Source of the DNA: Perkinsus chesapeaki ATCC PRA-425
Taxonomy: Eukaryota > Protista > Perkinsozoa
Direction of reading: 5' to 3'
Assembly: GCA_013115145.1 (NCBI GenBank)
Contig: JAAPAO010000364.1
Span: 1-35,952 of the forward strand
Length of the DNA: 35,952 bases
The position numbers and the translations under genes were made by a program. This document shows, in pieces, positions 3,465-34,344 of the stretch; position 1 is the stretch's first letter; every line of letters starts with the position of its first letter. The notes below the pieces were generated by a model. It did no database searches. It saw only the letters and a list, made by a program, of their open reading frames with translations, and was not told where the DNA came from.

Positions 3465-6049
3465 CATGAGGCGAAGTGCAGTGTTGGCATACCAGCCTGC
3501 TTCCTCTGCAACCCTCGCAGATCGGGTGCATAACAGAAATATGCAGAAATTGCAAAAAAATGTGTTTTCGTCGGCATCCTTTGGTTCCGCTAGAATGTAT
3601 TGTTCCCGAAGATCCGCGCATCGTAGAGAGTATACCCAATAACGATTCGGTGAAAAAATTCTTGCGCTTTGCTGAAGATGGCCGGCAGACACGCGGAGAA
3701 TGGAGAGCTAATAAGGACGGTGCTCGGTGAATCTGAGAATACGAGGATTGCAGGAAGTCGATTGCGGTCCTACCAGTATGAGCTCCATCGGCCTCTCAAC
3801 ATCGGACAGACGAGTTGATTGTCTGATGGATGAGCAAAGAAGGTTCATCAAAGACGTCACCGCCTGGATTGACAGCCTCAGGGGAAGGCTAACATCATTG
3901 GAAAGTAGCCAATTGACATATCTCAACAGCAATACGATTTTATACAAGGGTTCTAGCCGCCCGACCCCTACACACTACTGACCATGGTGAACGGGAAATT
4001 ACGATGTGTACGATCGTCATGTTGTCAGGAGCCCGGCCATCGTCAGACGAAGCTCATCTCGACAGTCTGCGTCAGCGTGTAGCTGAGATGGAAAACGAAA
4101 CACTGGCTTTAAGGAGATCTAGTCGAGATTACGTTACCGTTAACAGTTTGGAGAAGCGCCTTAATGAAGTTAAATCGTAGAAGTACCAAAGTCAAAATAA
4201 GACTGCAAAACAGGTGGAAAAAAGAAGGCCGGAGCGAACACTATTCCCGAAACATGTCTGTCGATGCCGAGACGCTGTGCCCAGTTCTGGTGGCTACCTA
4301 TCCGTGGAGGACCCTATCTACAGGTGCGTCTCGTTGATCTTTTATATTCACAATAGATACTTTGACATCACTTAATCTTGTTCACGAAGCTCTGCAATAA
4401 CTGGGCGAATAAGCTTTCACCTTTAGGACATTTGTTAGGTTTCCGGAAAGCTAAACAAACAATAGCAACTCGCTCAGGAATCTACTTCCTTGGCTCCGAA
4501 GGATGGTCATGGGAGAGTCCGGTTTTTGTATGTTCAAGATCAGCGAAGCCCGAAGAGTGCCGTGAAATCTTCGAGCCCGAAGAATCACTTGGCAGCACAC
4601 TCTGATCCGTCGTCGCAGAAGCTCTGAAATACTCTCATACGAAGACCTCGCAGTATGGCTGTGAAATGGAAAAAATCTACTTTAATTTTCCCCAAAAATT
4701 TTCCCCTTTTCGCAGGAGAATTTTTTCCAGGGAGCCGTTAATAATGCTGACTTAACATGCACGTTTTTAGGTCTTTGTGTAGTCGATTGGAGGACTTAGA
4801 AATGTCATCTTTGCGGAGGACAGATCGTCATTTTATCGAGGATTGTGCAAAGGTGAAGAATCCCTGAAACCTGTCTATTGATGATGGTCGCAAACAGTCA
4901 GTAATCGGCCAAACAGAAACGGAGAGAAGTGCCTTAGTGAAAAGAATAGAACGATTGGACAAAGCCATGAAGATACTGCAGGCCGATTCCGTCAAAGTGG
5001 GCCTTGGATCACGCAGCGTGATTGACAGCGAATCGTCGTTCGTTTTCAGCTTGTCGTTAGCCAGCCTGGCTAACGATAAGCTCGATGTTACTTCGTCAAC
5101 ATGTTTCTATTATACCCTCTCGGAGTATTATTCGACACACGAACAACCTTGTTCAGATGGATCGCTGCGACGTCCTCGAGAGTCGAATCGGCAAGCTTGA
5201 GATGGGTCGGGTGCATGAAAAAGATGAGCAGTTCCAACTTGCGGACAGGCATGTTGCCTGAGGCAGCTTCTACATGTTTATTGCCGATCTGATTGACCCG
5301 TTGAGGGCCGTTATTGTTGTTCAGAATCTGAACTTCAGATTCGACGCTCTTCGGGAGGGCCTAAGCAGTCACATCCTCCGCGTCATCGAAGTATTAAAGA
5401 ATGATATTTATAAGCAAGTATTGCTCGACCGTTGGATTGCATTGGAAAAACGCAGTGGCAGGTGGACGGCTCCATCCAGTCTTATGTGGCCAACCTAGAG
5501 CAATCTCTCTCCGATGCCCTCTTATCGGAGCGTCGTCTTTTTAATGAGAACATCGATGCGAGAGTGGAGGAGATGGTCAAAAATTTAAGCGAGCGACTCA
5601 AGGAGGATACTGTAGCGATTGGACTAGTCATGAAGTTTCAGTTACTGCATGTCAGAGGTTATTACGAGAAGAATGTCTCAAAGGCGTCGACGAGATGCTT
5701 TCGGCGTCGATTGCTGGTAAAGTGGGAAGTCCCAGATCAGTTATAGTTGAGACCCAGGAAAGCAAGCATGCGGATAAAATTGTTGGTGAGTTCAGCCCAT
5801 GTGAGGAGGTGTCAGACAAGAGTCCTGCCAGATGAACCAAAGATGCCTATAACGGAGCCCGAAGAGTCTAACAATGAGGAGCTGCAATTTGCGCAGACTC
5901 CTCTAATAATGAAGTCAGAAGTTGCCGTTGTCGAAGATGAAAACTCATCCCAATCCGAGAGTATTTCGGACGATGAGGCCAGCGTTCACGATCCGGATGC
6001 GTTGCTTGCTGAATTGGGAAATGATTGGGATAATGAGAGTGACACTTGA
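3465..6049 (+). CDS. Hypothetical coiled-coil protein(s), multi-exon; could be one or two genes
   Basis: Successive + strand exon-like segments with heptad character (IDSLRGRLTSLESS; LDSLRQRVAEMENETLAL; VKRIERLDKAMKILQ; ANLEQSLSDALLSE) and an acidic terminus (..DWDNESDT*). No family recognised. Confidence 0.5.
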
Positions 6050-6437
6050 TGTCTGACTTCCATGTGCCTTGCGTTGCAGAACGGAGTTTTGAGAACGTGG
6101 TGCTGTCGATATTGTAAATGAACTGACACTTGATCGAATCGAAGGAATAACATACACATCTTACAATAATTGTAAGTTACAATTTGTAATACAATCGTTC
6201 TAGTAAAGAAATGCATTAGATATTGTGAATTATTTGTGCGATAATACCTGGTATATTATTCGTCACTGATAGTTGGTCCGACAATCGGTCGCCCGATTAC
6301 AATAAGGTTGTTCAGTGTTCACAAATTGAGGCTTGCAGCAGTGTTTACTTTGCGGGAGTTATCGAAGTTGGGTGACTGAGTGATTCGGGATGACTCAACA
6401 CGCCAAGTAGATGAAACGGAAATAAGGACACATGACA

Positions 6438-9400
6438 TCATTCATCATTCGGTAACCCAAACGTCGCTGGACCTAATTCCATGTCCATGGGCTCCGTGCC
6501 GCCATTGGTTTGGGCAATATGATACCTGCAAGGGGAAACAAAGCAGTTTTGGGAACTGACTCTTCGAAGAGCAAAGCTGGTTGCCCGCTGGCATTAAGCA
6601 ATGCTTAATAAGCATTACTTCGGAGCGGCGCTATCTACGTTCGTTAATTCCGCACAGTCTTCCTGTACGTTCCACGCAAGAGCAGCAGCTATGAGTGCGG
6701 CGAAGCTACCAACGCCCAGCACTGCCGAAATGGAGCCACCTAAATCAACAAGAATCGAGGACTGAGGCAATTTCCGCTTACCTTGAAAAGCAAAGATCAG
6801 GCTAGAGATAACGCTCATGGTGATCTCCGGGTAGCACTGCGATAAGTTGAACACCGCAGTCAATCTAGCTCTGAAACAGCACCCGACGTATAACGCTGCA
6901 ATTGAGAACAGGGGCTACTCGATACCTGTGATCACGAAGGTCCGGCCTGCAGCATGTCTTTGAGACAAAAGTCCATGGTAACTGATGTGTTGCAGCCATC
7001 GGTATCCCAAAGAGGATGATGCAAAAACGGGATGCGGGAGCAGAGCCTGAGCATGTGATCATTACGGTAACAGGAATACAGTTTTTGGGCAGCCCCAAGT
7101 TATATAGTGCATCACGATCGGGTGGAGTACATGATGCTCTCCAGCAACCCAGTGGGAAGTGCTCACTCCCTTGATAACTGCTTATTAGGAACTGGGGTGC
7201 AATTTTCAAAGGTCGGCACTCAAAACTTGCGTATTCGATACGATTGAAACTCAAACTTCCTTCCCAACCGACTTGTGATTGGAAAGCAGCTTTCCGAAAG
7301 CTCCCGAGGGGAACGGTCCAGCCTCAGCTAACATTAGTAACAACGCGTTACAGAGAGTGAAACCCCAAGAGCATGTTATCATTACATCATGCTGAGAAGG
7401 AACGGCCGAGAACCCTTTCTGAGGTCTTGTCAATCAACGCGTCTGCCACTTACTAAACCACATTGACCATCTGGCAGATGGCATCTGCTTCCGGCTCGAA
7501 GCCTGGCAGTGAATTCTGATGATATCCGGCTTTAGACTTCACTGGTGATGAAGATTATATTTGTCACAACATAGTCTTCCTAGCCTTCAAATGCCTTTAA
7601 ATATTGGTTTAGCTTCAACCTCATTACTAACGAGCCAGTAGTTAAATGACCTTCTCGAATGCATTGTCGAAGCATCCGGCTGTGTCGCCCATGAAGGTGT
7701 TGGGTTGTATGAGACACCGAGGAGCGAGCACATTTGACTCATGCCTGACAATACAAGCTCCATTCTCTTTGCTGTCTCACGCATGGAGAAGCCAACGACG
7801 AGCATGCAGAAATTTGCTGGTGTATGCAACTTCCCGCAGCAATCGTCCGATCTGCCAAGACCCTGTAGTACGGGATCAAAACTGCTGAAGTCTCCGTTTT
7901 TAAGAGAGAATAAATGTCGTTAATGTATTCGAAATTGAACCGATATGAGCGGAATGCTCAAACCGTTCACCGCCTACCGTTGACACGTTTCCAGCTGGCC
8001 GGTCAATATGGCCTCAATGCTTCTTAACCGAAAACCCGGTTCTCGACAGTGGGTGTACAAGTCCTGCAGCAGGACTTGTCATGAGAAATCTTGCTGGACT
8101 TGGACGATTCGGGATTTGGGACCGATTAGATGTGGTAATACAGTGTTGGATACTATCCAATGGATAGTACAACTAGCACTCTGCTGCCAGCACGAAAACA
8201 CTGCAGGTTCCTAGCAGGCTGCTAGTAGCAGCGCCAGCAGTAAGAAATCGTGGAACGGTGGTACTCCCACCGTGGTAGTACCCCTTTTGGTACTGTACCA
8301 TTGATACATGGCATTCAGAGGGCAAAATGCTGGAACTTCAATAAGAAACATCTTCTGCACCTCAACGCAGTGATTGGCAGTCGTCTGGCCTACTCACGAG
8401 TAGTGACGCACTCAGCAAGCTCCCAACAAGAGATATCATGCACAACGACCACAGGCGAGCCAGCGAGATCTGCAATACATGACAGGAAAAGAACGCGTTG
8501 AATATTATCACAGGTTCTTACCTGGCGCTGCAAAGCTGGTAAGACTAGAGATACAATGCTGCAAAGACACGCAGACATGGCTAAACTGGCATTAGCATAT
8601 CTGACACCGTCTGCAAATAATCGCTTCTCGGAGTCCGAAGCGCCCTCCGAGTTCGAGCCACCGAAAATGACCAAGCCAACCCATTCGGTAGTGTACATGT
8701 AAATAGCGAACCATGCAAGATAGCTGAATGATTGAGCCGCGAAAGCGATCCGTATGGATCGCGGCATGACCCGAACCTAAATCGCGTAGCTTCGTCGATC
8801 GTCAGCAACTTCGTTGAGCAACGATCTCGATCGTAATGAATATGTGCATATACGTTTAATAACAAAACTATATTGGATATAAAATGACAGGCGAATGTGT
8901 TACACATTCGCAGATTATACAGTATCACTGTCTGTAAGTAAAAGACTTCTACTAGAAGTTTCCGGCTAACAAAGTGCCCCTCATCTCACCCCATCGCAGG
9001 CTTCCTTGAGAAACCTCTTCCCGCAATTCTCAGACGATATAGATGACACTTCCTTGCCCACGGCGTTAGACGTCGTCGAGTCCTCCGGGACGCAGCAGAC
9101 TGCAAGCGAACCAGAAATGATGACGTAGATGGAGGTGAAGGCGAAGACGGCGGAAACTTCGGAAGTGAAGGAGTTGCTAGAATCTGAAAATTACACAAAG
9201 CCGAGGTTTTCGGAATGTTCCGGTCGGATCGATAGAACCGATTTACTTGCAAAGTCGATTCCCCCGATAAAATAGCCTAATGCCGTACTGAGCCCAGCCG
9301 TCACACTAAGAGCTGCATTAGCCCGTGCCTGGAATGACACGGGGGGAAAGAAAGCAGGAACGTGCTAGAATACCTGAAGTGGCTCTGGAACGGTATCGAC

Positions 9401-10064
9401 CAATAAAGCGCGGAGTGGACCCTGATAGGCGTTGATAGAAATATCCAAAAACCAGAATGATATGGCAGCAGACAATGACGAAGTCGCATTGGAGAAGGCG
9501 AGCAAACCCGAGACCATACCAAACAGACCTGAAAGAGCATTCATTATTACTCGGTATTACCAACAATCCTTACCAGCGATGAGGAAAGGTTTACGCCTCC
9601 GCCCTATTCGATCGGAAAGCACACCGACAATGGGCTGAACGAGCATACCAGAAAACGGTCCTGCGAGCCAGGTGAGGGAAACCTATCAACTGCAGCTATT
9701 CCAGACAACATACATCCTACAATTTCTCTGGGGCGAAGATAACAGACGTTTCTGATTGCGAATCAAAATGCACTATCAGTCAGGTTATCGAGCTTCGACG
9801 CAGATGGAACACAGTTGCCGCACTGGCCTGTTGTAGAGCAGCTCAGCCACCTTTAGTGTGGCACAGGAAATGAACGTACAAGATTATAGTCTCGCTCTCC
9901 GCAGCCAGAAGAGAAACCCCCATACAGTCGCAACCACCCACCATTGTGTTAGACATGCCTAAGCCCTTTAAGGTAGGAGTGCTGTACCCTATCTGGACCG
10001 CCCAACTTATCATACAGCAAGACCATGATAAAGATAAAAGTAATATTACCAACCACGAATGCAT
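6438..10064 (-). CDS. Sucrose/H+ symporter-like MFS transporter (SUT/SLC45, GPH family), many exons
   Basis: Family motifs occur in the expected order: SWAVQIGYSTPTLKGLG; GPFSGMLVQPIVGVLSDRIGRRRKPFLIAG; FSYLAWFAIYMYTTEWVG...FADGVRYANASL; IILFGIPMAATHQLPWTFVS; TAVFNLSQCYPEI. A phase-2 intron (~6526-6618) adds a last exon YHIAQ..LPNDE* ending at 6438. The start codon is uncertain. Confidence 0.85.
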
Positions 10065-10383: not shown

Positions 10384-12400
10384 TCAGACTGGTGGCTCCA
10401 ACGCCGCTGATACTGAAGCAGTCGGTTGGACCACTTCCAGCACGAATTCAACGCGGTTGTTTTTCGTCGAAATATCGTCATCCTGATTTTCGGAAACTGA
10501 GTCCTCGCCCGACTCCTCGAAGACATCTCCCATTAGTCGATGCCTAACCTTGTGCAGAAGCTTTGTGAGAAGATGAATGCTGAAACCTAAGGGGACTCGG
10601 AATTAGAATAATTATTGTTATTGTTGAGGTCGTCGCCTTACATCCAAGAAATGCAGCAAAACCATAACGTCCTCCAATGTCACCTGTCCACCACCAAATA
10701 GATATTAATAATATACCACTCCAAATACCAGTAATAAATATTGATATTATATCCGATAATATTGGCTTATTATTAATAGATATTAATGAATATGAACCAG
10801 GTGATGCAGCTGGACCACTCATACCTAATAATAATTATAATAATAATAACTAACAACAACAACCATTACCAACAAATGAACCTGTCCAAATGAACAACAT
10901 CAACGGGTTCGTGCTCGGCGGTAAAAACAATCCCGCTGCTAACGACACCATAGCAGAGGCAACCACTGGAGAGAAATGAGGGTTGAAATAGAGATGGAGC
11001 CAAAGCGTGACAGCCTAAAGAAACGATCCACAAAACACGCTTCTCCATGCAAAAGCTACACTTGCAACCGCGCACGCAACAACAAAGCTTATCGTCACCA
11101 TTGTCGAGATGAGGACGTTGCCATCCGCGTAGGAGTGAAACCATCGGTCTGTCCTGAAACAGATGATGGGAAGCTGGTGAGCTTTCATCGCCTACCAAGA
11201 TTGGAATGCATCGTCAGGGTCAAGACTTGTGGAGGTCCAAGTGCCGGACTGAACTAGGACTATAAATAGTGCGCTGATGTGACCAGCGACATAGGCCATC
11301 ATACCTGTGGAGGGATGCTAATGAGTAAGGGGCTGGACGGACTCATACCGAGTTTTCCTCCGATACCATGCAGCACATGGCGAAGGGAAAATGTGACGCA
11401 GATGAAAACAAAACACACGAAAGGCTCCCATTGGAGAGTGAAGGCCTGAGTAGCAGCAGTCATATAATGGGCTTCCTCTGCTGAGCTTTAAGATTCTCTC
11501 GGCGACTCATCATCGATAAAACATTCTTAGCTGGGAATGCAGAAACCGGAAATGCGGCCTTCCCTCGCCAACACTTAGGCAAACGAATGTTCTATGAATC
11601 GACACTTTTTCAAAGTATTCCAACACTGCCTAACCTACATCATTCGTCGAAGCCGAGACAAAACTGGCTCCATAGGCAGTCTCTCGATAGGGCGATGACA
11701 AGGTCAAACCAGCTAGGATCTGACGTATGCGTACGAAAGTACAAAGATTGAAACGAGCTCACTCCGATGACGCTTGCTGATGCAACACCGTTAATGCCAT
11801 AGATGTCTTGGGCGACGTATTTGGCCAAGAGGAGGGATGCTAGTGAGACACAGTAGCCGATGAGAACGGTTAATAGAGAGCGTAGGATTCTGGATAGGAC
11901 ATGCTTGTATCGCGAAGGGCAAGAGGAAACAAACCGCATCAACTACATGTATAAGATGTTTGATAGGAAATATGTTACTAGTGATACAGAGAAGGAGATA
12001 TAATAGAAAGGAGTTTGATAGGAGATATGTTACTAGTGATACGGAGGAGGAGATATAATAGAAAGGAGTTTGATAGGAGATATGTTACTAGTGATACGGA
12101 GGAGGAGATATAATAGAAAGGAATTTGATAGGAAATATGTTACTAGTGATACAGATGAGGAGATATAATAGAAAGGAGTTTGATAGGGAATATGTTAGTA
12201 GTGATACGGAGAAGGAGATATCATAGAAGAGTTTGATAGGAAATATGTTACTAGTGCAGATCTATATGCCTGCTTGAAAGATACGGCCCACAGGAACGGA
12301 ACAGAACAAATCTATATCGCGTCACTCGATGCTCGTCTATGATTCTCTCGTCACCCACATCAACGCCGAGGGAGCCTCTTCGGGAGGGACACCGGACGAC
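10384..12400 (-). CDS. Uncharacterised dual-repeat multi-pass membrane protein, paralog 1 (start uncertain)
   Basis: Spliced read: LLAKYVAQDIYGINGVASASVIG|ILAGLTLSSPYRETAYGASFVSASTN|AFTLQWEPFVCFVF..HGIGGKLG|...LPPSTNPLMLFIWTGSFVG|MSGPAASPG..WWTGDIGGRYGFAAFLG|..FSIHLLTKLL..EPPV* (stop 10384-10386). Confidence 0.8.
11958..12256. repeat. 55-bp minisatellite, ~5.5 copies, probably intronic in paralog 1
   Basis: Unit gtttgatagg(a/g)aatatgttactagtgatac(a/g)gagRaggagatataatagaaagga starts at 11958, 12013, 12068, 12123, 12178 and 12231. Units are diverged at several positions, with one 2-nt deletion. Confidence 0.95.
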
Positions 12401-12578
12401 ACAAGTGTTACAACAACTCAACAGCAAAGGCTTGAAGTAGAAAACCCATTACCCGAAAATACGATGACTAGCGTAAGCTAAATAACAGTGGGAAACATGG
12501 ACATAAGCCCCTCCCAGAAGGGTAGCGATCTACAGAAGGCATTCTCTTAGAGAATATATCAAATATATACGTCATCAG

Positions 12579-14896
12579 TTATACAACACTCGAGTCATCT
12601 TCAGAAACATCTTCTTTTTCGACCGACTTCATTCGACTATTGAAATTCTGTACACATTTTGTGAACAGATGGACGGTGAAACCTAAGGGGACTCGGAATT
12701 AGAATTATTATTGTTATTGTTGAGGTCGTCGCCTTACATCCAAGAAATGCAGCAAAACCATAACGTCCTCCAATGTCACCTGTCCACCACCAAATAGATA
12801 TTAATAATATACCACTCCAAATACCAGTAATAAATATTGATATTATATCCGATAATATTGGCTTATTATTAATAGATATTAATGAATATGAACCAGGTGA
12901 TGCAGCTGGACCACTCATACCTAATAATAATTATAATAATAATAACTAACAACAACAACAACCATTACCAACAAATGAACCTGTCCAAATGAACAACATC
13001 AACGGGTTCGTGCTGGGCGGTAAAAACACGCTCGCTGCCAAACTGACAACCGATGACGCCGTTACAGGATTGGCAGAGTGATGAACATGAAACCACAATG
13101 TGAAGGACTAAGGACAGCAAAATCGCGACATTTCGTGGCGAGTGACGCACCGCTGAGAGTCCACAAGCAGTGATCATGCCGATAGAACTCAGCATTGACA
13201 GCAGTAGAGAATCATATCGAAATAACCAGATTCCAGTCCTGAGCACAAGTAACTGCATGTCGGGGCATTCACTCTTACCAATTAGTGATGCCATATTCAG
13301 GATTGAGTGTTGCGGTGTCCCATGTAGCTTGACCGAATAGGACCAAAATGACCGCCGATAGATGACCAGCGAGATAGGCAGTTGCGCCTGTTAGAGCACA
13401 CGGTGGTCAATTGATATGGGGAAATCGGAGCTACCTAATTTGCCACCGATCCCTAGAAAAAATGGCCGGAAGGCGAAACTAAGGATGACGAAAAGGAGGG
13501 CTATGAAACCTTCCCAACGAAGAGTGAACGCCTGAACAATGCCATACCGACACTTCCACAACTAGTCTTACTTTGCTGGATGATGAAGCGATGAACCCAG
13601 CACCTAGCGAGAACTCCCTGTATGGCGAGGGGAGCAAGCTTCCTGCTATAACCTAACACAAGTGGCAGCTTTCAGCTGCACCAGCTCGGAAACCTCCAAA
13701 CCCAATCGCAAAATTATGCAGTCATAAATAGACTAACGCAGAGGATACGCTTATCGTTGGACTGTGATCTCCCTGGGGACTGCTCCACTGGACCGTGGCT
13801 AATAGGAATACAAATTGGCAGAGGAGTCTTTGTTATGTGGGATATAATACGAATGGATATGGAGTATATGGCCCTGTTAAATCCGATTTAAAAAATATAT
13901 TAAACGAGGAGGGAGAACGAAACACGAAATCTGATAACAACTGATGGTCCCAGCGGCTTATGCACAAAGATTCAAGCCTTCAAGCTTAAATTCCTGTCCT
14001 GCACAAATAGATCATATTAGAAGGAAACGCTAACCGAGTGAAAGCCTGGAGACATAAATGACAACCCTGCTGGCTGCTTCAGAGAATAACTTATTCGGGC
14101 GAGACGAATGTTCCAAAGCCTCGGCAAAACCGAATAACATATGACAAACTGAGGCAAGTCACGGTAAATCCAAAACGGACACCGAGCGGCGGCAATACAC
14201 TAATAAAACTACACCAGGGCTGCTTGCAACGAATTAGCCCACTGCCCACTCGATAGTCGTACAACGGCATGGAGAGCCGTTGAAAACACATACGGCGATC
14301 TTATCAACAGAGCAGTGACCGCCTGCGCGCTCAGAGCATCCTCCCACCGTTCTCAAACCAACCCGATATTACCCCTACGACGCTTGATGCGGTCATGCCG
14401 GTGACATTATTAACGTCACGCGCTATATATTTAGCCAAAAGCTGTGATGACAGTGTAACGGTGTAGGCCAGAAGGAAGTCCTTGAGGAGGGGAAGGAATT
14501 GAACGAACAGGAGAGTAGCAATTCTGGAGGATTGTGCTTCATTATTTGTACGCATCTGTCAGCGAAAAAAACTGTGAACAGGCCTGGCTTGTTAACGTTG
14601 AAACTCAAGATTCTTATTATTAAGACACATGTTGGCTGCATTCCCCATGGACAGGATGATGCTCTCCACCACCACCACACGGTAGGCTCTGCCGCCGTTC
14701 CAGGGTGATACCAGCAAATGCTGCAATGACGCCACCAAGCAGAGTGATGCCTTTTGGCAGGGATATCTGATGGAGGAATCACTCATCAGTATAATATTAT
14801 TACCTCATTAATTATAGCATAGCCGAAAGATGCCACCCAGATGCCCACAATGACGAATAGCGCTGCTGCAGATAAAACCAATAAACGGTAGGCCAA
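12579..14896 (-). CDS. Uncharacterised dual-repeat multi-pass membrane protein, paralog 2, with extra N-terminal TM exons (may extend to ~15650)
   Basis: LLAKYIARDVNNVTGMTASSVVG|(720-nt intron 13653-14372)|VIAGSLLPSPYREFSLGAGFIASSSSK|AFTLRWEGF..FLGIGGKLG|..NPVTASSVVSLAASVFLPPSTNPLMLFIWTGSFVG|MSGP..GDIGGRYG|..FTVHLFTK..DDSSVV* (stop 12579-12581). Phase-0 exons 14804-14896 and 14629-14766 splice in frame onto 14555. Confidence 0.75.
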
Positions 14897-15769
14897 CTAA
14901 GGGAAGTTGCATTATCGCCTCTTGCCTGTTGGGTACCCTTTTTTGCCGTTTCAAAGTCTTCCTGGCTTGCCTTTCACGCTGAAGCTCCAGAAGGCATCTT
15001 GTTAGGAGAGCTGGATCGACGCCGTTCTTCGCCTAGAAAAGATACTTCTACACATCAGCAATGCGGGGTGGTGTTGATATGGAATTCAATCCAAAACAAA
15101 TACAGACGGATCGAATGACAAGGCTTGAAGATATCAACTATTGTAATACCGGTTATCTGCCCGAAGGAGGATCACCTACCGTAAAGTCCTCCTCCTCCTC
15201 AAGAGAGTACTTCAAGCACCTAAACCCGAGCTGTAGCTTCAGACAACAGCGTCGCTACTTCTCATCTCCAGCAGGGAACTGGGTGTATATATCGGCTGTC
15301 ATGGAAGCAATAAGTATTAGCTGAAATCATCGCCTACAGATCTTAGCGGAAAAAATTCAGACATTTCACGGAATTTCTGGCATCCTCCAGCGAGTATCCC
15401 AACCGAGGATGCCCAAAAAATGCCAACACTGCCTAAAACGGCTCCTGAATTAATGGCGAGAACTCTACAAAGGAAACACTTTGCTGGAAATGACAACGGG
15501 AACTGTCGAAACCGAACAATGATCGGTGGGGTTATCAATTAACAGCAATTGTAGAATCGTTGTAAAGTTATATAGACGATAGGAACATATATACCAGCAG
15601 TAACGACATCACCCCACAGCACCGAGCACACCAGGAGCGGCTTCGGTGATCTGTATAGTGATGATAACCATATTAAGTAACGTACACGAAGAACTATACA
15701 CTAGCTGTAGAAGCATGAAGAAATAATAAGCGACTAAATGCAGCAGCAGCAAAGGCCTGGAATGGCTAC

Positions 15770-17505
15770 TTAGAGATAGGCCTGCATTTCAGACACCGAG
15801 CGTCGTGATGTGTGAATGCTATCCATTTCCACTGCATTTCTGTAACGTGGCATCTGGAGCGTCTCGATAACCACGCCGCTTTCATTATCGTCATTGGCTT
15901 CCTCTTCTGGTTCGGCAATAGCATTTGGCGCATCAACAGAATCCTCACCAAACACGCCTGCTGCGGAATCTCTACTTTGCACCGACGAGAGTTCATCGTC
16001 AGATCCGCGATGACTGTCATTTTCCGGATCAGGTTCGTCGCCAGAGGCGCCCTTAAACCCTTCGGAGACCTCATCATCTGGTTCGCTCTTCACTGCCTTC
16101 ATTTCGAATGCAGACACAATATCATCAGTACTACTGCTGTCAATCTTCTTCTTGCTCAGACCATTATCCTCCAGAGCTGCCTTAAGCTCCCTCCTCTCAT
16201 TGCGCCATTTCGTGAACAAATGCATCGGCAAGCCTGATTGGGAATAATAATCAACTGTTTGGGCATGGAGACTTACATGCACAGTGGGCGATGAATCCGA
16301 ATTTCCCACCGATACCAGGTGATGTCCACCAGATACCAATCTGGATTAAACCAGCAATGACGCCAGTGATGAATATCGATACCATATCAGAGTAAACCTG
16401 CGGTTTATTATCAAAATGCACGAGAGCGTAAGCGCCGGGTTTGGCAGCTGGAGCGCTCATACCTGAGTAGGACAATAGAGTTCTAGATTTATACGGTTAT
16501 GACTAATATTACCAACAAACGAACCAGTCCATATGAAGAAGTTGAGGGGATTCGTTGAAGGTGGTAGATACAAACCAGCTGCCAGTGATACTATAGATGA
16601 TGCCACCACTGGGTTGGAGTTCTTATCGAAATGAACATGCAACCACAAAGTTACACACTAAAAAATAAACAACTTTATTAATAGCATCCTAACACTCCGC
16701 TTACCCCGGCTAACGCGCATGCCAAGACGAATGCTATGTCGACGAATACGTTAGTAACAATACTTCCGTTGTTGAAGCGATAAAACCAAAAGTTGACCCT
16801 AAAGCAGGGAAATAAATGACCGATTCCAAGTCTAGTTGGGGGCAGTACCAAGTGCCGAACCTAGCTGTTGGATCCAAGCATGTGGTCTCCCAAGTACCTC
16901 CTTGGAAGGCGACAATAAATAATGCACTAATATGACCAGCAACGAACACAGTCATACCTGAGATGGATGCATGGTGGGTTGGAAGAGGCAATGGGCTTCT
17001 TACCTAGCTTGCCACCTAGGCCGTTGAGAATGGGACGGAAGGCGTTATTAACGGTAATGAAGACAAAGCAGACCCATGCCTCCCATTGTATAGTGAAAGC
17101 CTGAGGATGACGGTGGCGGTGGAATTGGGTAAATATATCTTACAGCATTGGTAGAACATGATGTGAAACCTCCACCATATGCAAACTCTCTATATGGGGA
17201 CGGTAAAGTGAGACCAGCAAGTAACTGAATATATAATATATTATAATAAATATTATTATTATTACACCAACAACACTTGCTGATGCTACACCATTAATAT
17301 GGTATACACCTCTTGCTACATATTTAGCAAGTAATTCATATGGGAATGTTATTAACCAACCAAGGACTTCTTTTGTGATAAAATCAGCAATAAAGTCATA
17401 AGTAGGTGATGGTTTCTTCCCTTCTCTACGAAATAACTTAAAGAGGAATATATTAAATATCCTCTCAGCTTCCTCCATTGAGAACCATATACCGTCGTAA
17501 GCCAT
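15770..17505 (-). CDS. Uncharacterised dual-repeat multi-pass membrane protein, paralog 3, with acidic C-terminal tail
   Basis: MAYDGIWFSMEE..LLAKYVARGVYHINGVASASVVG|LLAGLTLPSPYREFAYGGGFTSCSTNA|AFTIQWEAW..NGLGGKLG|MTVFVAGHISA..|FWFYRFNNGSIVTNVFVDIAF..|PVVASSIVSLAAGLYLPPSTNPLNFFIWTGSFVG|MSAPAAKPG..SPGIGGKFGFIAH..tail..RRSVSEMQAYL*. All joins use GT-AG introns. Confidence 0.85.
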
Positions 17506-17914
17506 ATTTATATAGTATGCCCCAAAGGGTAGTGAAACTAAAAAATCAAAGTAATAATTGACAACCAAAGTGACACAAAATAATAATCGTCCGTGGCTAA
17601 TCACCATTTGCTTAACCTGGAATACTCTAGAAAACCCGCCTCTGGCTGCAACGGACAGCCAATCCGACGAATTATTCATCTCTCTGGACGTCATACACCT
17701 TCACGCGCCTCGTAATTATATCGCCCGCCTTGTGCGGTGCACCGCTCGGCGCAAAAGCGTGTTACGAGACGAAGTTGTGGCCAACAGTCACGACCCATGA
17801 AAAACATCTCGAACCGTTTATAATGGAACAGCTTCTATGCTATTATTGTGTTCGTATTGAAGTATTCTTGCCGCAGGACTCCTGCGTATCTTCGAGCTAA
17901 ACAGCGTCGCGTTA

Positions 17915-20495
17915 GTGACAAAAGTGCTGTCACACGTTAGACGTGGACAGCAGTGCTGTCACAGCACCAATCTCTCGGATGATCGTCGAGTCATAACTTA
18001 TCAGAGATTTCGTCACGAAATTTTCGTGCTGTCTCCTTCGGAAGGGGGCCTTATCACACTCCCGTACCATGGGTTTTTACGATGACACTCTGAGTCAGCG
18101 CCACTGACACTTCGACGGCCAGATGCATCGCATGCTGCCCGAATCTGCAACTACGATTCGTTTTTTGTTTTCGGAAAGCAAAAACTCGTCGAATAGACTC
18201 ACAAAGTGAGTCTCACATAGAGGCCGACCTCTCGTCCATACTCTCAGACTCTGAGACTCAGTGTTACTCATAGCCGATTTGTCCTTTGACTGTCAAACTT
18301 TGACAAAGTTTGACATTGCTGACGACGCTTCCAGTGGAGATGATAAAGGTAATCGACTATCCTCCGGTCAACCCATTCGGTTGACCGTGGGTGACACTGT
18401 CACCCATCCCGAACAGGGCATGGGGCCCATGCCATGGGCCAAACATTCTCCGAGACGGTGGCTAATCCGTCATGTACCTTATAGTCTCGAATAGCTAAGC
18501 AGGCTTAAAGCAGCTGCCAAGTTGGCAGTGCCAACATCCATGCCCGAGGCTTGGACCTCAAGGTCCTTGAGGTCCTTGAGTCAAGGACTCCTTGACGAGG
18601 AGTAAGCGAGCTCGGAAGACCCGTAATGATAGAGAGCAAAAGTTTGGGAAGGAGAGAAAAAAGTTTGGGCCGGCGCGGAACAAAAGATTTGGTCGCCCAG
18701 TGGGCGCCGCCAACCTGGCGGTGTCAAGAGTCATGTCGCATGAGTCTCTGACTCTGCCGAATCGTATTGATAGGTCTCTGAGATAGAGACCTCTCTATAC
18801 ATTTCGGCATTAGCCTGGGACCTGTACACAACCACGTTGAGGCTTTCGCAAGCACAATTACTCGAAGGAACAGAGAGGTGGGCCACCTCAGGTGGCTTTC
18901 TCTCGATGAGAATCTCACCACAAAATGTGTATAATGCTATGAGATGGTTCCAAGAGCGACGCGATATTCCCTATTATGAGGAGTCCTCATGTGATCATGA
19001 TATGTCATATGGCATTCTCATAGGATCCCTAGATGGGTGCGATTATGGCGCTGCCATATCAGATTAGCTAATAGACCCGAGGGAAACCCTGATATTTCCT
19101 ACAATCGCGAAGGCTCCCATTCCCTGAGTTGCGTGCTCGTCGTTAGTGACGATATGATGGTAAAGTACGCACACGTTTCTAAGACAATGACGACAATTAA
19201 ATGTTCAAGTTCGTACCTGACGAAGGCGTCTTTGCCATTTCCCAGAGGCGTGACGTACCCATAGGCGGAAACAAGGCATGACACAAGGCAATAGACAAGG
19301 TGGAGCAAGTCACATGCGCAAATCCAACATGGATTTCTGAAACTGTTAGTAAGTGAACAGGTCACCTGGTGACCGTCACCATGAGCAGCTCATACATTCG
19401 CTTCGGCCAACTTGGCGAGTGGAGCTCGCATGACAGTAATTTAGTGTCACTAAGGATTTCTACTCTACAGTAATGGGAAGGCTTTGCACCAAGATTGCCT
19501 GTCACAAACAGCGGACTTGAGCTTACGAACTTTGACAGTTCGACAATTCAACTGGCAGATTCAGCGCACGTGACAGTTCAGCTGGCCAGTTCCCAGTAGG
19601 CCCAAATGTGAGCTGAGCGGGCACAATCATCACAAGGCTTGACACACCCCAGGCTGAGCCATAACATAAAGGCAGGCATGAATTCTAGATCAACAACCAG
19701 GCTACTGCCGTCTTGCGTAATACGCAAATGCGTATATCTGTCGCACTTTTCGCCATGTCCAATATTATTCATCCGCCGAATTTGCTGATTGAAACTCGAG
19801 CACCATCGTCGGTTCATTTTCATTTGAAGAATAAGCGAACGACCATCATGAGCTTCCGCTGGATGTCATCGCGTTACCCGATTCATGCGGTGGACGTTTC
19901 TGACAGAAACTTCCTGTAGTACGGAAATTCTGTAACATAATGGTGCTGTATGGTAAAGATTTTATAGTGAGATCACGACCAGCGGTCGTACTGTTACAGT
20001 TGTACTGTAAGCGATCGGCTCCTCTGGGGGCTAAAAACTTGTTAGTTACGCTCTCAATAACGGTTACAGTAACCGGGTTACTGAGTAACCTGATAGGTTA
20101 AACCCATCGAGAGCTTCCATAATCGCAGGTGATGCTTTAAAAATGAGGACCCTCTAATAGTTGAAGCTTGGTTGTGGGATGCTAACACGTGTGAAACTGC
20201 TACGAGCTACAGCACAGATATTCGCGTTCTTATTTACAACACGATCATTGCCTTTCGACACATAAAAACCTGAACATTGCTCAGTGTCACTTAGTCAGCG
20301 AGCAGCTGAACGGACTGAAATTGGGATTGCGCAGTGTTTCCTCGAACCACCACAAAGACTACAGAAATATGAGTGAAACCGAGCAACCGTTCCACCTACT
20401 GTAAAGAAGCACGGACGAAACATCGGGCAACTGACACTCTATCACTGATGATCACTCCGTACCGAGTGACCGTATACCGTCCATGATGGATGATA
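17915..20495. repeat. Non-coding field of short overlapping palindromes
   Basis: About 27 perfect palindromes with 6-12 bp arms and a single central base. Examples: 18291-18315 tgtcaaactttg-a-caaagtttgaca; 18553-18575 ggacctcaagg-t-ccttgaggtcc; 18388-18406; 20061-20100 (chain of four). Confidence 0.9.
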
Positions 20496-20497
20496 GA

Positions 20498-22906
20498 TCA
20501 AAGATAGTCTCCCATCTCGGTCATCGTTCTTTTCTTCATGCCTTGCGTGGTGCCCCCGTCATCATCCCGTCGACTCAGAGTCTCGATTATAACGCCGGCT
20601 CCCTCGTCCGAATCGGGAGGGCTTACAGTTGAAGACACGGGGGTGTTTCCTTCACTTGCACAATCACAGTCCGAGTCACCGGAAGAGGCATCGCTGAAAT
20701 TTGTGCTCCGATCCTCAGGTGGAGAATCATCGTTAGTAGCAGTGTGTCTGCCGCAACCAGCAGTCTTGGTTCCAGAATTGTCGAATTCGATCTTGAACAA
20801 CCTCCTCTCATCCCGCCACTTCGTAACCAGGTGGACAGGTACACCTGAAGGCGTAACAATGTCACGGTAAGCTATCATAAGTGATATATAGCAGTCATTT
20901 GGTTACGGCTGACCGAAGAATCAGCTAGGGCGTGGAGACTTACACGCACAGTGGGCGATGAATCCGAATTTGCCACCGATACCAGGTGATGTCCACCAGA
21001 TACCAATCTGGATTAAACCAGCAATGACGCCAGTGATGAATACCGATACCATATCAGAGTAAACCTGCGGTTTATTATCAAAATGCACGAGAGCGTAAGC
21101 GCCGGGTTTGGCAGCTGGAGCGCTCATACCTGAGTAGGATACAAAAGTAAAATAAGTCTGTAATATTATCCTGGGTAATATTCCAGATTTGTATAATATC
21201 CCAGGTAATTACTAAGGCGATAATTATTACCAACGAACGAACCAGTCCAAATGAATAGACTGAGGGGATTTGTAGAAGGCGGGAGATACAAACCGGCTGG
21301 TAATGATACCAATGCTGATGCTAGCACTGGATTAGAGTTCTTATCGAAATACACATGTATCCATAAGGTAATACACTAAGAAGCGCAATACACCATAAGG
21401 TATAAGACTAAATGACATACTCGTGAACCTACACCAGCGAGCGCACATGCAAGGATGAACGCTATGTCGACGAATACGTTAGTAACAATACTCCCATTAT
21501 TGAACCGATAAAACCAGAACTCGGACCTGAACCGGTAACTTCCCCCTGCCATCACTCTTCTGATCTCTTACCATGTCTGGAAGCGCTGGGTTGGATCAAG
21601 GCTTGAGGTTTCCCATGTGGCGCACTGGAATGCTACTATTAAGAGCGCACTGATATGTCCGGCTATGTAGACGGTGAAGCCTGCAGTAGTAGGTAATGCG
21701 AGCTAGATATGGGTGTGCAAGCTGCACCTAGCTTCCCGCCTAAGCCGTTGAGGATTGGACGAAATGCGTTGTTGACAGTGACGAAGACAATACACACCAA
21801 TGCCTCCCATTTTATAGTGAATGCCTAATAAGACAAAACAGAGTGGAAACAATTAGGTGCGATAGACGAAATCGCATATACACGTGCTCGGTAATGTATG
21901 TTTCTCCGGCGAATAATATCCGGATCGCGCAGCTGAAACTGTTTCAACTACAGTGTTACACTGTTTCACACTGTGCGGATCTCGCCACACAACTCGCTAT
22001 GAAGCTAGTAAGAGAAGGAGCGTAAAAAACAATTTCCAGCCTTTTTATCCATACGTTGGTAATACCGAGTCGGTATTTATCGGGTGCTTTTGAGAACGTA
22101 CTTCCTAGAATTTCGAGGGAGTACGGTAATTCCAAGCTGGTATAACGCTGTCCACAAGACGCATATTCCAGCGACATGCCTAGCCATAAAACTGGTCGGG
22201 GGAGGGATGCCTGAGCTGTAGCCATATCAAAAAAGTTGTCAAGAAGCAGTTTTGTTTCGCAACACCATATAGACTATATTGTGCTTCGAAATCAAAAGCT
22301 TTGATTCAAAGTGCTTCTCAAGTAGCGTTCAAGTCAGTTCTACAAGTAGCTATATGATATAGACTACTGTATATCATAGTTGCTAGTCGTGTCTATGACG
22401 GGATAAGACCATCTCTCGAGCTGTTACTCCAGATGTCACTTGCATCAATGAAGGATTAGTACCGAGTCTGAATTATATTATATAAGCTATACTCAAAGAC
22501 TTCAAGTTGAAGTCTAATCATACAGCAGACCCTGGAGATCTTACAGCATTGGTAGAACATGATGTGAAACCTCCACCATATGCAAACTCTCTATATGGGG
22601 ACGGTAAAGTTAGACCAGCAAGTAACTGAATATATAATATATTATAATAAATATTATTATTATTACACCAACAACACTTGCTGATGCTACACCATTAATA
22701 TGGTATACACCTCTTGCTACATATTTAGCAAGTAATTCATATGGGGATGTTATTAACCAACCAAGGACTTCTTTTGTGATAAAATCAGCAATAAAGTCAT
22801 AAGTAGGTGATGGTTTCTTCCCTTCTCTACGGAATAACTTAAAGAGGAATATATTAAATATCCTCTCAGCTTCCTCCATTGAGAACCATATACCGTCGTA
22901 AGCCAT
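20498..22906 (-). CDS. Uncharacterised dual-repeat multi-pass membrane protein, paralog 4
   Basis: Same exon series as paralog 3, with a 720-nt intron (21825-22544) after STNA. The tail ends GVIIETL..KRTMTEMGDYL*. Confidence 0.8.
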
Positions 22907-23304: not shown

Positions 23305-24207
23305 TCAATATGCTAGCGTGAAGTTACCCGACGGCCCAGGAACCTCCGAAGACCGTCTAATAAATAGCGCATGCCCACATGGACTTAGCTCCGGAACATA
23401 CTCGTCGGGAAGGGACAAACCAGTCTTTAACGACGATATAGTGACTGCGGAGCCTTTCTCTGGTAGCAAGTACAACAAGAGTAGTTCACCAAACCACTGA
23501 CCATCAGCCGCTTCAGATTCCGCCTCCAAACAAATAACATCAAATCCTACTAGTGCGATGAACGGCACATAAGTTGCCTCAAAAGGTGCTTCAATAACCC
23601 TTGTTGTTATTGTACTCGAGCCTTGCTTATCCACAATAACGAAGTAATTAGCTTCTTCAGTCATATCGTTATGTATTATACGATAATGCCCTTGGCCTGT
23701 TTCCAATATATCAAACGCGTGAACAATGGTCGTTGTTATCGAGTAAATGAGTTCGAACGACCGTTCTGGTGCCTCCCAAGGATCAACTCGATATATCTTG
23801 AACACATATGCCCCAATTAACCCGTAATATAGGATACCCTTGCGATGCACAACCATCCACATAACGACAAGTTCGTTATCAGCTGGTGGTGGCTCAATCG
23901 TTAATGGCTCAGCCAACTGGGATGACCTGACCTCAAATTTGCCTTCCCCTTTATTCTCAAGGACAGCATTTTTCTCAAGAAATGGTGTTGTTCTTAAGCC
24001 AACATTATTCCGCCACCATCCGCCTTCGCGGCAAATTGAGCATCTTGCACCACCGTGTTTGAGAATACCTCTAGGGTGCCGTGGGAAGGTTAAAAACTCC
24101 CAAACACCACCAAAGATATCGGTTGGTATTCTACTACAGCTTAGGTGTCGTTTAAGAGAGTTTAGTTCGAGTGCTACACGTTCTCTTGTAGCTAACAGCA
24201 GCATCAT
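23305..24207 (-). CDS. Intronless 300-aa hypothetical protein, possible degenerate N-terminal F-box-like motif followed by a beta-rich region
   Basis: Uninterrupted 903-nt ORF starting ATG ATG. RIPTDIFGGVWEFL resembles the F-box LPxEIxxxIxxFL pattern (weak). Confidence 0.65.
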   Translation of the reverse strand: MMLLLATRERVALELNSLKRHLSCSRIPTDIFGGVWEFLTFPRHPRGILKHGGARCSICREGGWWRNNVGLRTTPFLEKNAVLENKGEGKFEVRSSQLAEPLTIEPPPADNELVVMWMVVHRKGILYYGLIGAYVFKIYRVDPWEAPERSFELIYSITTTIVHAFDILETGQGHYRIIHNDMTEEANYFVIVDKQGSSTITTRVIEAPFEATYVPFIALVGFDVICLEAESEAADGQWFGELLLLYLLPEKGSAVTISSLKTGLSLPDEYVPELSPCGHALFIRRSSEVPGPSGNFTLAY

Positions 24208-32468: not shown

Positions 32469-33397
32469 TTAGAAAGTATCTGGGGGAGGGGTAGTTTCCT
32501 CACAGGGGGGCAATGTGGGCGACTTTTCCTTCGGAGATTCGGTAAACTCAGTCGTGGCAGTTGTTGTTGATGGGCAAGGAGAATGAGTACTGGACTCCGT
32601 AGTAGTGGTCGTAGTTGTCGCCGGCTCACTCATAGAAGTGGTTGTAGTTGTCGTCGGCTCAGTTGTAGTTGCGGTCGTAGTTGTCGTCGGCTCACTGGTA
32701 GTAGTGGTCGTAGTTGTCGTCGGCTCACTGGTAGTTGTGGTTGTAGTTGTCGTCGGCTCACTGGTAGTAGTGGTCGTAGTTGTCGTCGGCTCACTGGTAG
32801 TTGTGGTTGTAGTTGTCGTCGGCTCAGTTGTAGTTGTGGTTGTAGTTGTCGTCGGCTCACTCGTAGAAGTGGTCGTAGTTGTCGTCGGCTCACTTGTAGT
32901 TGTGGTTGTAGTTGTCGTAGGCTCACTCGTAGAAGTGGTTGTAGTTGTCGTCGGCTCAGTTGTAGTTGTGGTTGTAGTCGTCGTCGGCTCAGTTGTAGTT
33001 GTCGTCGGTTTCTTTGTAGTTGTAGTTGCACCACATGGTACAGGATAGCGTTCCGGACATTTTATAGTAGGATTTCTGAACCAGCACATCTCGGAGCTGA
33101 TGGAGGGGTCCTGCAAATAGTATCTAAGTGACAATTACGAAGCCCATTCATATAGCATCTGACTCACAGTGCATAGCAGTGCCCAGGTCCCCCAACGGCA
33201 GGCTTGCAATAAGAGAACTTGCATCCAGGAACTTGCCTACAAATGTCCTCGCAACTGTCCTGAGAGCGAAAAATTCACATCAATGGCATCAGTGGTGCAA
33301 TAGGACCCACTGTTGCTTGGGTGCTCCTTCTCAACAAGTCTTTACCAGACACCGAGTACACAAGCGATAGAGCAGTGACTACAATGAGTCGAAGCAT
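32469..33397 (-). CDS. Secreted protein: signal peptide, 8-Cys domain, Thr-rich mucin stalk
   Basis: MLRLIVVTALSLVYSVSG signal, then the spliced domain DSCEDICRQVPGCKFSYCKPAVGGPGHCYALYYLQDPSISSEMCWFRNPTIKCPERYPVPCG, then (T)nSEP repeats. No TM or GPI-like hydrophobic tail seen. Confidence 0.85.
32630..33034 (-). repeat. Coding tandem repeat, ~33-bp unit (TTTTTTTTSEP), ~11-12 copies
   Basis: Recurring gtagttgtcgtcggctca at ~33-nt spacing on the + strand. Confidence 0.95.
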
Positions 33398-33468
33398 GTC
33401 CAGGAACGTGATACTGATGAACCTGGGAGAAGAAACGGGAGAAGGCGGCCCGCGATGAGCATCCAAGC

Positions 33469-34344
33469 GTGACGTACCGAAGGAAACTGTCTATCGGTCA
33501 CAGTCGGCTGTCACCCAGCAGCGGTGTCACGGCCGCGAAATGGAGCCAAACCTCAACAGCAGCAACCATATACCAATGTAATAACCGGCACCACCCCCTA
33601 GAGACCAAAGGGAAGCAGGACAGTCTGTGTACGGGGAGCGACGGAGCGGAGGCTTTCCCTTCAAGCGCTGGTTCCATTGCTCACGGAACAACAGCCCCAA
33701 GGATACGTGTTAGCTTGTAGTCTGTACTCGATTCTTGATCACCAAACTTCAGCCATCTTAGTTCTACTATTATAGTTTGTACTCCTCAATCTTGGGTTTC
33801 GTTACCTACAATTGGTCCTAGAGGTAGCAAGTCGAGCTGATGCGGTGTGCAAGGAACAGTAATGCCCGCCGTCATAGACAACAACTAACTAGGGTCACTA
33901 TGATACCACAACATCCAAGCAGGGAGCTATGAGGATTACACGATGGACTCATCACTTGTCCTCTACAAATCTCACACTGACGGGAATATCCCCTCCTCAG
34001 GAACCACAGGGCGTCAGTCGAGTCCGGATGATTGAACAGGTTTGAGGGCGGCTTCATTCGATGAAGGTTGTCACTTCTCATCATAATATCGTCAATGCAC
34101 CGCGACGCCTGACGCCTATACTAGAGCCTGCCCAAGCTAGCACTGCTTTATTAAGAGCAGTGCAGCAATAGATTCACATCATCATCATCATCATCATGAT
34201 GACTTATGCGTGCATGGTGTGACCGAAGCTCTGAGCGTTGTGGAAATGGAATCCATTTCTATCAATGGAAAGACCATAGTGAACTCTAAAAGTGTTGATA
34301 CTCCACTCGGAAATGGTGTCGCATACGTGGGTCGACAACAATGA
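33469..34344 (+). CDS. Possible hypothetical multi-exon gene
   Basis: Only short open frames (e.g. ..VVEMESISINGKTIVNSKSVDTPLGNGVAYVGRQQ*). Strand and structure are uncertain. Confidence 0.25.

Follow-up and report, generated by a model that had tools for sequence, protein, structure and literature searches.

Densely packed 22-nt palindromic scars in Perkinsus chesapeaki probably record hAT-type transposon excision

Introduction

Cut-and-paste excision of DNA transposons is normally invisible in genomes because the footprints it leaves are short and heterogeneous. The excision mechanism of hAT elements is textbook knowledge, and hAT footprints are the closest described counterpart of the structures reported here. 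When Ac/Ds elements excise, they leave palindromic insertions whose central base is the complement of the base next to the element; the arms can be as long as 20 nt in yeast, and the joints commonly show microhomology (PMC5873905). Footprints of Ac/Ds and of other hAT elements in plants, yeast and Candida are heterogeneous, mostly short and derived from single donor sites in experiments. Templated palindromic additions are also produced during V(D)J recombination, where a sealed flank hairpin made by RAG is opened off its tip to give P nucleotides. RAG nicks exactly at the border, which makes P tracts even-centred palindromes only a few nucleotides long. Template switching and polymerase-theta end joining create inverted templated insertions near breaks, which are seen as quasi-palindromes or short inverted copies of adjacent sequence. 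Finally, target duplications of 8 or 9 bp and hairpins on flanking DNA are known from the MULE transposon Muta1 (PMC5499845).

Here we describe a dense field of palindromic scars in Perkinsus, an oyster and clam parasite and an early-branching relative of dinoflagellates and apicomplexans. The scars resemble the footprints of Ac/Ds and other hAT elements in the 8-bp target duplication on each side, in centres that are complemented bases and in the proposed microhomology at the joint (PMC5873905). Unlike those footprints, they are dominated by one product, whose 7-nt arms are complete on either side and whose gain is always +14 bp, and they stand densely with no element nearby. They share with P nucleotides the templated palindromic addition but have a single central base, arms of at least 7 nt and, in addition, the flanking duplication. 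The size of the duplication (8–9 bp) and the hairpin on flanking DNA are also features of Muta1; in that system, however, the hairpin is formed without offset and excision is mostly precise (PMC5499845). Template-switch, quasi-palindrome and polymerase-theta insertions are similar in being short inverted copies of neighbouring sequence but lack a fixed 8-bp unit, complemented single-base centres and a stereotyped gain of 14 bp.

Results

Odd-centred palindromes crowd a spacer between two tandem genes

The studied window is the whole of contig JAAPAO010000364.1 (35,952 nt) from assembly GCA_013115145.1, the proteins of which are deposited under Perkinsus chesapeaki. All positions below refer to this window. 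An original prediction, made from the letters alone, had claimed about 27 perfect palindromes with one central base at positions 17915-20495 against a chance expectation of about 0.6. A direct scan of this interval for palindromes with a single central base and arms of 6 nt or longer returned 29, compared with 0.68 ± 0.78 (maximum 3) in 200 dinucleotide-preserving shuffles. We conclude that the crowd of palindromes between the two P. chesapeaki genes is real. The shuffled controls that had been proposed as a check, taken across spacer lengths, placed the excess in odd-centred palindromes only. Even spacers of 0, 2, 4 and 6 nt gave 0, 3, 2 and 1 palindromes, respectively, which is chance level. 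Spacers of 3, 5 and 7 nt were also in excess, mostly as identical palindromes counted again with shorter arms. Across the whole window 74 palindromes were found compared with 9 expected.

The palindromes are regularly spaced. Their centres lie 7 nt apart in 15 neighbor pairs and 8 nt apart in 3, while every other distance up to 30 nt occurs at most once, and the modal arm length is 7 nt. Nearly all coordinates in the original list of palindrome chains hold; the exceptions are 18251-18261, which has 5-nt arms, 19720-19735, which has a 2-nt centre, and 20086-20100, which has a 3-nt centre. That list was also incomplete, having missed an exact chain at 18007-18028. Its statement that the arms all differ, and hence form neither a repeat family nor the binding site of a single factor, agrees with our searches: the arms are mutually unrelated, the 8-bp sites deduced below are all different, and no direct-repeat family was found in the field. 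We therefore rejected a repeat family or binding site as the origin of the pattern. Likewise, the field showed neither tandem repeats nor a shift in composition, and we found no paralogous copy of it inside the window.

An origin of the field in faulty assembly was rejected as well. A unitig of 3,527 nt covering 17476-21002 is present in Logan contigs with 0 differences, 0 gaps and flat depth, and this support comes from three DNA runs on two samples in two studies. The recurrence of an identical unitig across independent runs indicates that the field sequence is real and not an assembly artefact. A lack of support from raw reads had been named in advance as grounds for dismissing the field; the independent read assemblies reproduced it. 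The field is monomorphic in the sampled reads, and no site polymorphic for an 8-bp and a 22-bp form was seen. One minor variant was recorded in two runs of one sample, where minor contigs carry an extra A at 18571/18572, inside a compound palindrome, at a depth of 77–103 compared with 189–253. Either the variant is genuine or the extra base arose as a slip of sequencing or assembly at the hairpin.

The chains follow a single 22-nt format built on an 8-bp unit

The chains of overlapping palindromes share one format, x-D-y'-rc(D)-x'-D-y, in which D is 6 nt long, x and y are single bases and the total is 22 nt. Such a 22-mer reads as an 8-bp word forward, in reverse complement and forward again, a gain of 14 bp over the plain word. 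It can equally be described as a pair of 15-nt palindromes, each with 7-nt arms, at a centre-to-centre distance of 7 nt. The two central bases of every 22-mer complement the bases at the two ends of the unit. Exact 22-mers occur 13 times in the window compared with 1e-4 expected, and 7 of the 13 are located in the field (Table 1). The original view of the field as the accumulated footprint of a process is supported.

The format is specific for the 8-bp unit. Exact scars in the window on units of 6, 7, 8, 9 and 10 bp number 1, 0, 13, 2 and 0, respectively, and a search of the window for the blunt form D-rc(D)-D yielded no case. Direct 6-mer repeats show a sharp single peak at an offset of 14 (28 compared with 5.3) and none at an offset of 8. 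The classical two-copy short hAT footprint of 16 nt is not enriched (1 compared with 0.35), which means that a repair outcome producing these scars would need to be unusually uniform. As a separate observation, the form on a 5-bp unit is slightly above chance (4 compared with 0.55).

We then allowed for mismatches between the arms. The window contains 13, 6 and 14 22-mers with 0, 1 and 2 broken pairs, respectively, compared with 0, 0.05 and 0.1 in shuffles, and the scars thus span a range from pristine to decayed. Within 17860-20110 there are 19 scars with 0–2 broken pairs. The density in native non-coding DNA reaches up to about one scar per 120–150 bp.

The deduced 8-bp sites were inspected for a common pattern. 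Many hAT elements have the target consensus nTnnnnAn, in which positions 2 and 7 matter. T at position 2 and A at position 7 account for 19 of 46 cases compared with a background of 0.27 (p = 0.02), a weak bias in a small sample. Bases 2 and 7 complement each other in 11 of the 23 sites (p = 0.015, again a small sample); the other symmetric pairs show no such complementarity.

Table 1. Coordinates of scars, related palindromes and flanking genes in the studied window.
Position	Strand	Feature	Inferred 8-bp site	Remarks
5246-8959		Second scar field		Inside the ranges of genes 3778-6049 (plus) and 6438-9646 (minus, MFS_1)
15770-17505	minus	Membrane-protein gene (paralog 3)		471 aa
17506-20497		Intergenic spacer		About 3 kb; separates two tandem Perkinsus-specific membrane-protein genes
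17865-17886		Decayed 22-nt scar, 2 broken pairs		Contains palindrome 17872-17886; candidate empty-site partner in paralogous contig
17946-17967		Exact 22-nt scar	GACAGCAC	Template scan
18007-18028		Exact 22-nt scar	ATTTCGTG	Template scan
18242-18263		22-nt scar, one broken pair	TCTCAGAG	
18284-18315		Compound		22-nt scar at 18284-18305 (one pair broken) and, overlapping it, a 25-nt palindrome at 18291-18315 (arms of 12 nt)
18388-18406		Lone palindrome, 9-nt arms		No third copy
18418-18439		Exact 22-nt scar	GCATGGGC	
18514-18535		Exact 22-nt scar	CTGCCAAC	
18553-18596		Compound		Palindrome with 11-nt arms (18553-18575), 9-nt tandem duplication and exact 25-nt scar (18572-18596)
18875-18896		Exact 22-nt scar	GAGGTGGC	
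19360-19381		Exact 22-nt scar	GGTCACCA	
19713-19735		23-nt scar		22-nt format plus one A after the second centre; palindrome 19713-19727
19896-19917		22-nt scar, one broken pair	GTTTCTGT	
20061-20107		Exact 22-nt scar (20061-20082), then decayed palindromes (20076-20090, 20086-20107)	CGGTTACT	
20498-22906	minus	Membrane-protein gene (paralog 4)		436 aa
22055-22513		Three decayed scars, each with 2 broken pairs, plus several odd palindromes		Intron of paralog 4

Scar field limits and departures from the format

Inside the intergenic spacer the scar field spans 17865 to 20107 (Table 1). Some of its members depart from the 22-nt format. The two exact 25-nt scars of the window, at 6160-6184 and 18572-18596, are built on a 9-bp unit and may stem from target duplications that were sometimes 9 bp long, or from another transposon family. 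When each 22-mer was collapsed to its 8 bp, no second-round (nested) scars were uncovered. Similarly, the palindromes with 9–12-nt arms, the 9-bp-unit scars and the compound structures could not be reduced to nested 22-mers. Together with the 23-nt variant, these forms may represent long hairpin tracts on one side only, or else events in which 9 bp were duplicated; the lone palindrome at 18388-18406 would be an example of a one-sided tract.

A candidate empty site was found for the first scar of the field. A short paralogous contig of higher depth matches 17774-17861 at about 86% identity and then appears to diverge. When aligned by eye, the 30 letters that follow match the window again once exactly 14 nt are skipped, and the skipped stretch falls on the scar at 17865-17886. 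In place of the scar the contig bears a plain 8-mer that is one base off the inferred site. The contig and the scar thus form a suggestive but thin candidate for an empty-site/scar pair, over 30 letters of a paralog about 86% identical.

Scars recur elsewhere in the window and in Perkinsus olseni

Having defined the format, we located scars in other parts of the window. A second field contains exact 22-mers starting at 5319, 6594, 7281, 7467, 8146 and 8211, together with the 25-nt form at 6160-6184 and several decayed scars. As this field falls within two gene ranges (Table 1), its scars are presumably intronic. Decayed scars were also found in an intron of paralog 4 (21827-22537), which is about 680 nt longer than its counterpart in paralog 3 (17103-17136). 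The flanks are 82–99% identical. The extra DNA holds the decayed scars and many odd palindromes. The conserved gene block at 23–36 kb contained no scars in its introns and spacers, which amount to about 5 kb.

Scars of the same format are present in a second species. At the syntenic locus of P. olseni (JABANP010000061.1), exact 22-nt scars lie at 7-28 and 2405-2426, and three near-exact ones at 252, 1163 and 1902. These are located upstream of and inside an Alg14/KYNU-like gene, and the P. olseni spacer homologous to the field is nearly free of palindromes. Between P. chesapeaki and P. olseni only exons could be aligned (about 70–75%) and intergenic DNA could not; an alignment of P. olseni strains over about 10 kb contained no 14-nt indel.

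The presence of scars in other parts of the window and in P. olseni points to a trait that is genome-wide but clustered. The notion that the field is a special locus does not survive under the rule that had been set for it, since the same scars occur at 5.2-9.0 kb and 22.0-22.5 kb in introns and in P. olseni. Local hopping of an element or local tolerance of insertions are possible causes of the clustering.

Discussion

Excision of a hAT-type element would account for the scar format

We consider it likely that the field is a graveyard of excision scars left by a hAT-type cut-and-paste DNA transposon. Insertion of such an element would duplicate an 8-bp target x-D-y, with D of 6 bases. At excision, the transposase would nick one base into the flank and seal the two strands of each flank as a hairpin, the tip of which would be the complement of the element-adjoining base (y' on the left and x' on the right). 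The left hairpin would then read x-D-y'-rc(D)-x' and the right one y'-rc(D)-x'-D-y, with the 8 nt y'-rc(D)-x' common to both. Opening of the hairpins by host nucleases several bases off the tip would produce 3' tails that end in the 8 nt y'-rc(D)-x', over which the two ends complement each other perfectly. Pairing of the tails through this 8-nt microhomology, followed by gap fill-in and ligation, would always give x-D-y'-rc(D)-x'-D-y, that is 22 nt in place of 8 (+14 bp). Because different nick positions would converge on one product, the scheme would explain the uniformity of the scars. It predicts odd centres only, centres that are complemented bases, an 8-bp unit, a gain of 14 bp and a centre spacing of 7 nt. 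The transposon itself, the opening of hairpins far from the tip and the joining by microhomology are parts of the scheme that we infer. Among the mechanisms put forward in the original prediction, P-nucleotide-like hairpin opening after transposon excision is thus the one that fits the 8-bp unit, the complemented centres and the gain of 14 bp.

A different hairpin-forming superfamily could have made the scars instead of hAT proper, either a Mutator-like one with 8–10-bp duplications or an undescribed group. We regard this as improbable. The duplications and flank hairpins of Muta1, and the two scars on a 9-bp unit found here, speak for it. The hairpin product of Muta1 is 43+43 nt, however, and without a 1-nt offset it would give an even palindrome, a form absent here; moreover, over 90% of Muta1 excisions are precise (PMC5499845). 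Our scans found neither an excess of even centres nor any D-rc(D)-D, and the 13 to 2 ratio of 8-bp to 9-bp units likewise argues against a Mutator-like source. The lack of an element in the window and the strong clustering and great uniformity of the scars would also suit a transposase-derived host nuclease, or some programmed hairpin-forming activity, acting without a mobile element. Against such an activity, a third copy of D can arise only where 8 bp had been duplicated beforehand, and such a duplication is the signature of insertion; a single break with hairpins would yield X-X' alone. We know of no transposase-derived host enzyme that makes such scars, and we judge this origin to be very improbable.

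The remaining two readings concern processes other than transposition, and both had been raised in the original prediction, the second for a centromere or origin. Template switching at replication (quasi-palindrome or fold-back) and snap-back synthesis by polymerase theta yield inverted templated insertions at breaks and could in principle build X-X'-X arrangements. They do not predict a fixed unit length, where we observed 13 scars at 8 bp and none at 7 bp, nor 1-nt centres that complement the outermost bases of the unit, and both processes need loops longer than 1 nt. Accordingly, we hold snap-back synthesis or template switching to be very unlikely as the source. The very high density of palindromes in one spacer would suit DNA selected to form cruciforms at a centromere, an origin or a regulatory region, a reading to which we give almost no credence. 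The same scars are present in introns outside the field and at non-homologous places in P. olseni, whose homologous spacer is almost without them, and they mark neither a unique locus nor a conserved position. Their arms are unrelated, they decay by substitution as neutral DNA does, and the field has no tandem repeat or compositional shift.

Novelty and meaning of the scars

While the mechanism of hAT excision is known, we found no published description of the uniformity and density seen in Perkinsus. A literature search on Perkinsus palindromes, hAT elements or end joining returned nothing relevant, and we found no description of a dominant, uniform +14-bp footprint at such density in native DNA. 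The Perkinsus footprint is long, uniform and recognizable from sequence alone, so that past excisions, their target sites, ages and clustering become directly countable. The scars point to an unusual resolution of DNA hairpins and joining of breaks, which bears on the outcomes of genome editing in Perkinsus. For annotation, such palindromes should not be taken for regulatory elements, centromeres or origins.

We tentatively extend hAT-type excision to a broader proposal, which we put forward as a possibility that is less likely true than false. Flank hairpins in Perkinsus might nearly always be opened well away from the tip and the ends joined by way of the 8-nt microhomology, each excision adding an identical, self-identifying scar of +14 bp. 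Tens of thousands of past jumps would then be countable in the non-coding DNA, part of which would consist of scars, and dense fields would be trails of local hopping. Classical end joining is perhaps weak or missing in Perkinsus.

Other features of the locus

A scan of the window and of the P. olseni locus revealed no transposon or transposase relic. Candidate inverted termini with 7–9-bp duplications, sought in the window and in JABANP010000061.1, were rejected as AT-rich chance matches only. The spacer holding the field is untranscribed in the one RNA run analyzed, in which no contig crosses 17400-20945. Rfam and tRNA searches gave zero matches, and Pfam searches of the 10 longest open reading frames of the spacer gave no signal of a hidden coding sequence or transposase relic.

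The surrounding region (10384-22906) is a tandem array of a Perkinsus-restricted membrane-protein family located beside an MFS transporter gene (6438-9646). A matching array is found in P. olseni (JABANP010000061.1, 10001-22065), where one family member is annotated as an MFS_1 fusion of 1,352 aa. At 23305-24207 on the minus strand, an annotated single-exon gene of 300 aa has only itself as a homologue among 5.8 billion proteins. It has no counterpart at the syntenic position in P. olseni, which is bounded by the WD40 gene and the family gene, and is thus an orphan gene or else an artefact of annotation. Two tandem repeats were also noted. At 11898-12256, a 55-nt unit is present in 5–6 tandem copies within the range of a 694-aa family gene and is presumably intronic. 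The gene at 32469-33875 contains, at 32500-33093, a 33-nt unit (11 codons) repeated in tandem at least 13 times, with a strong skew of G over C and T over A.
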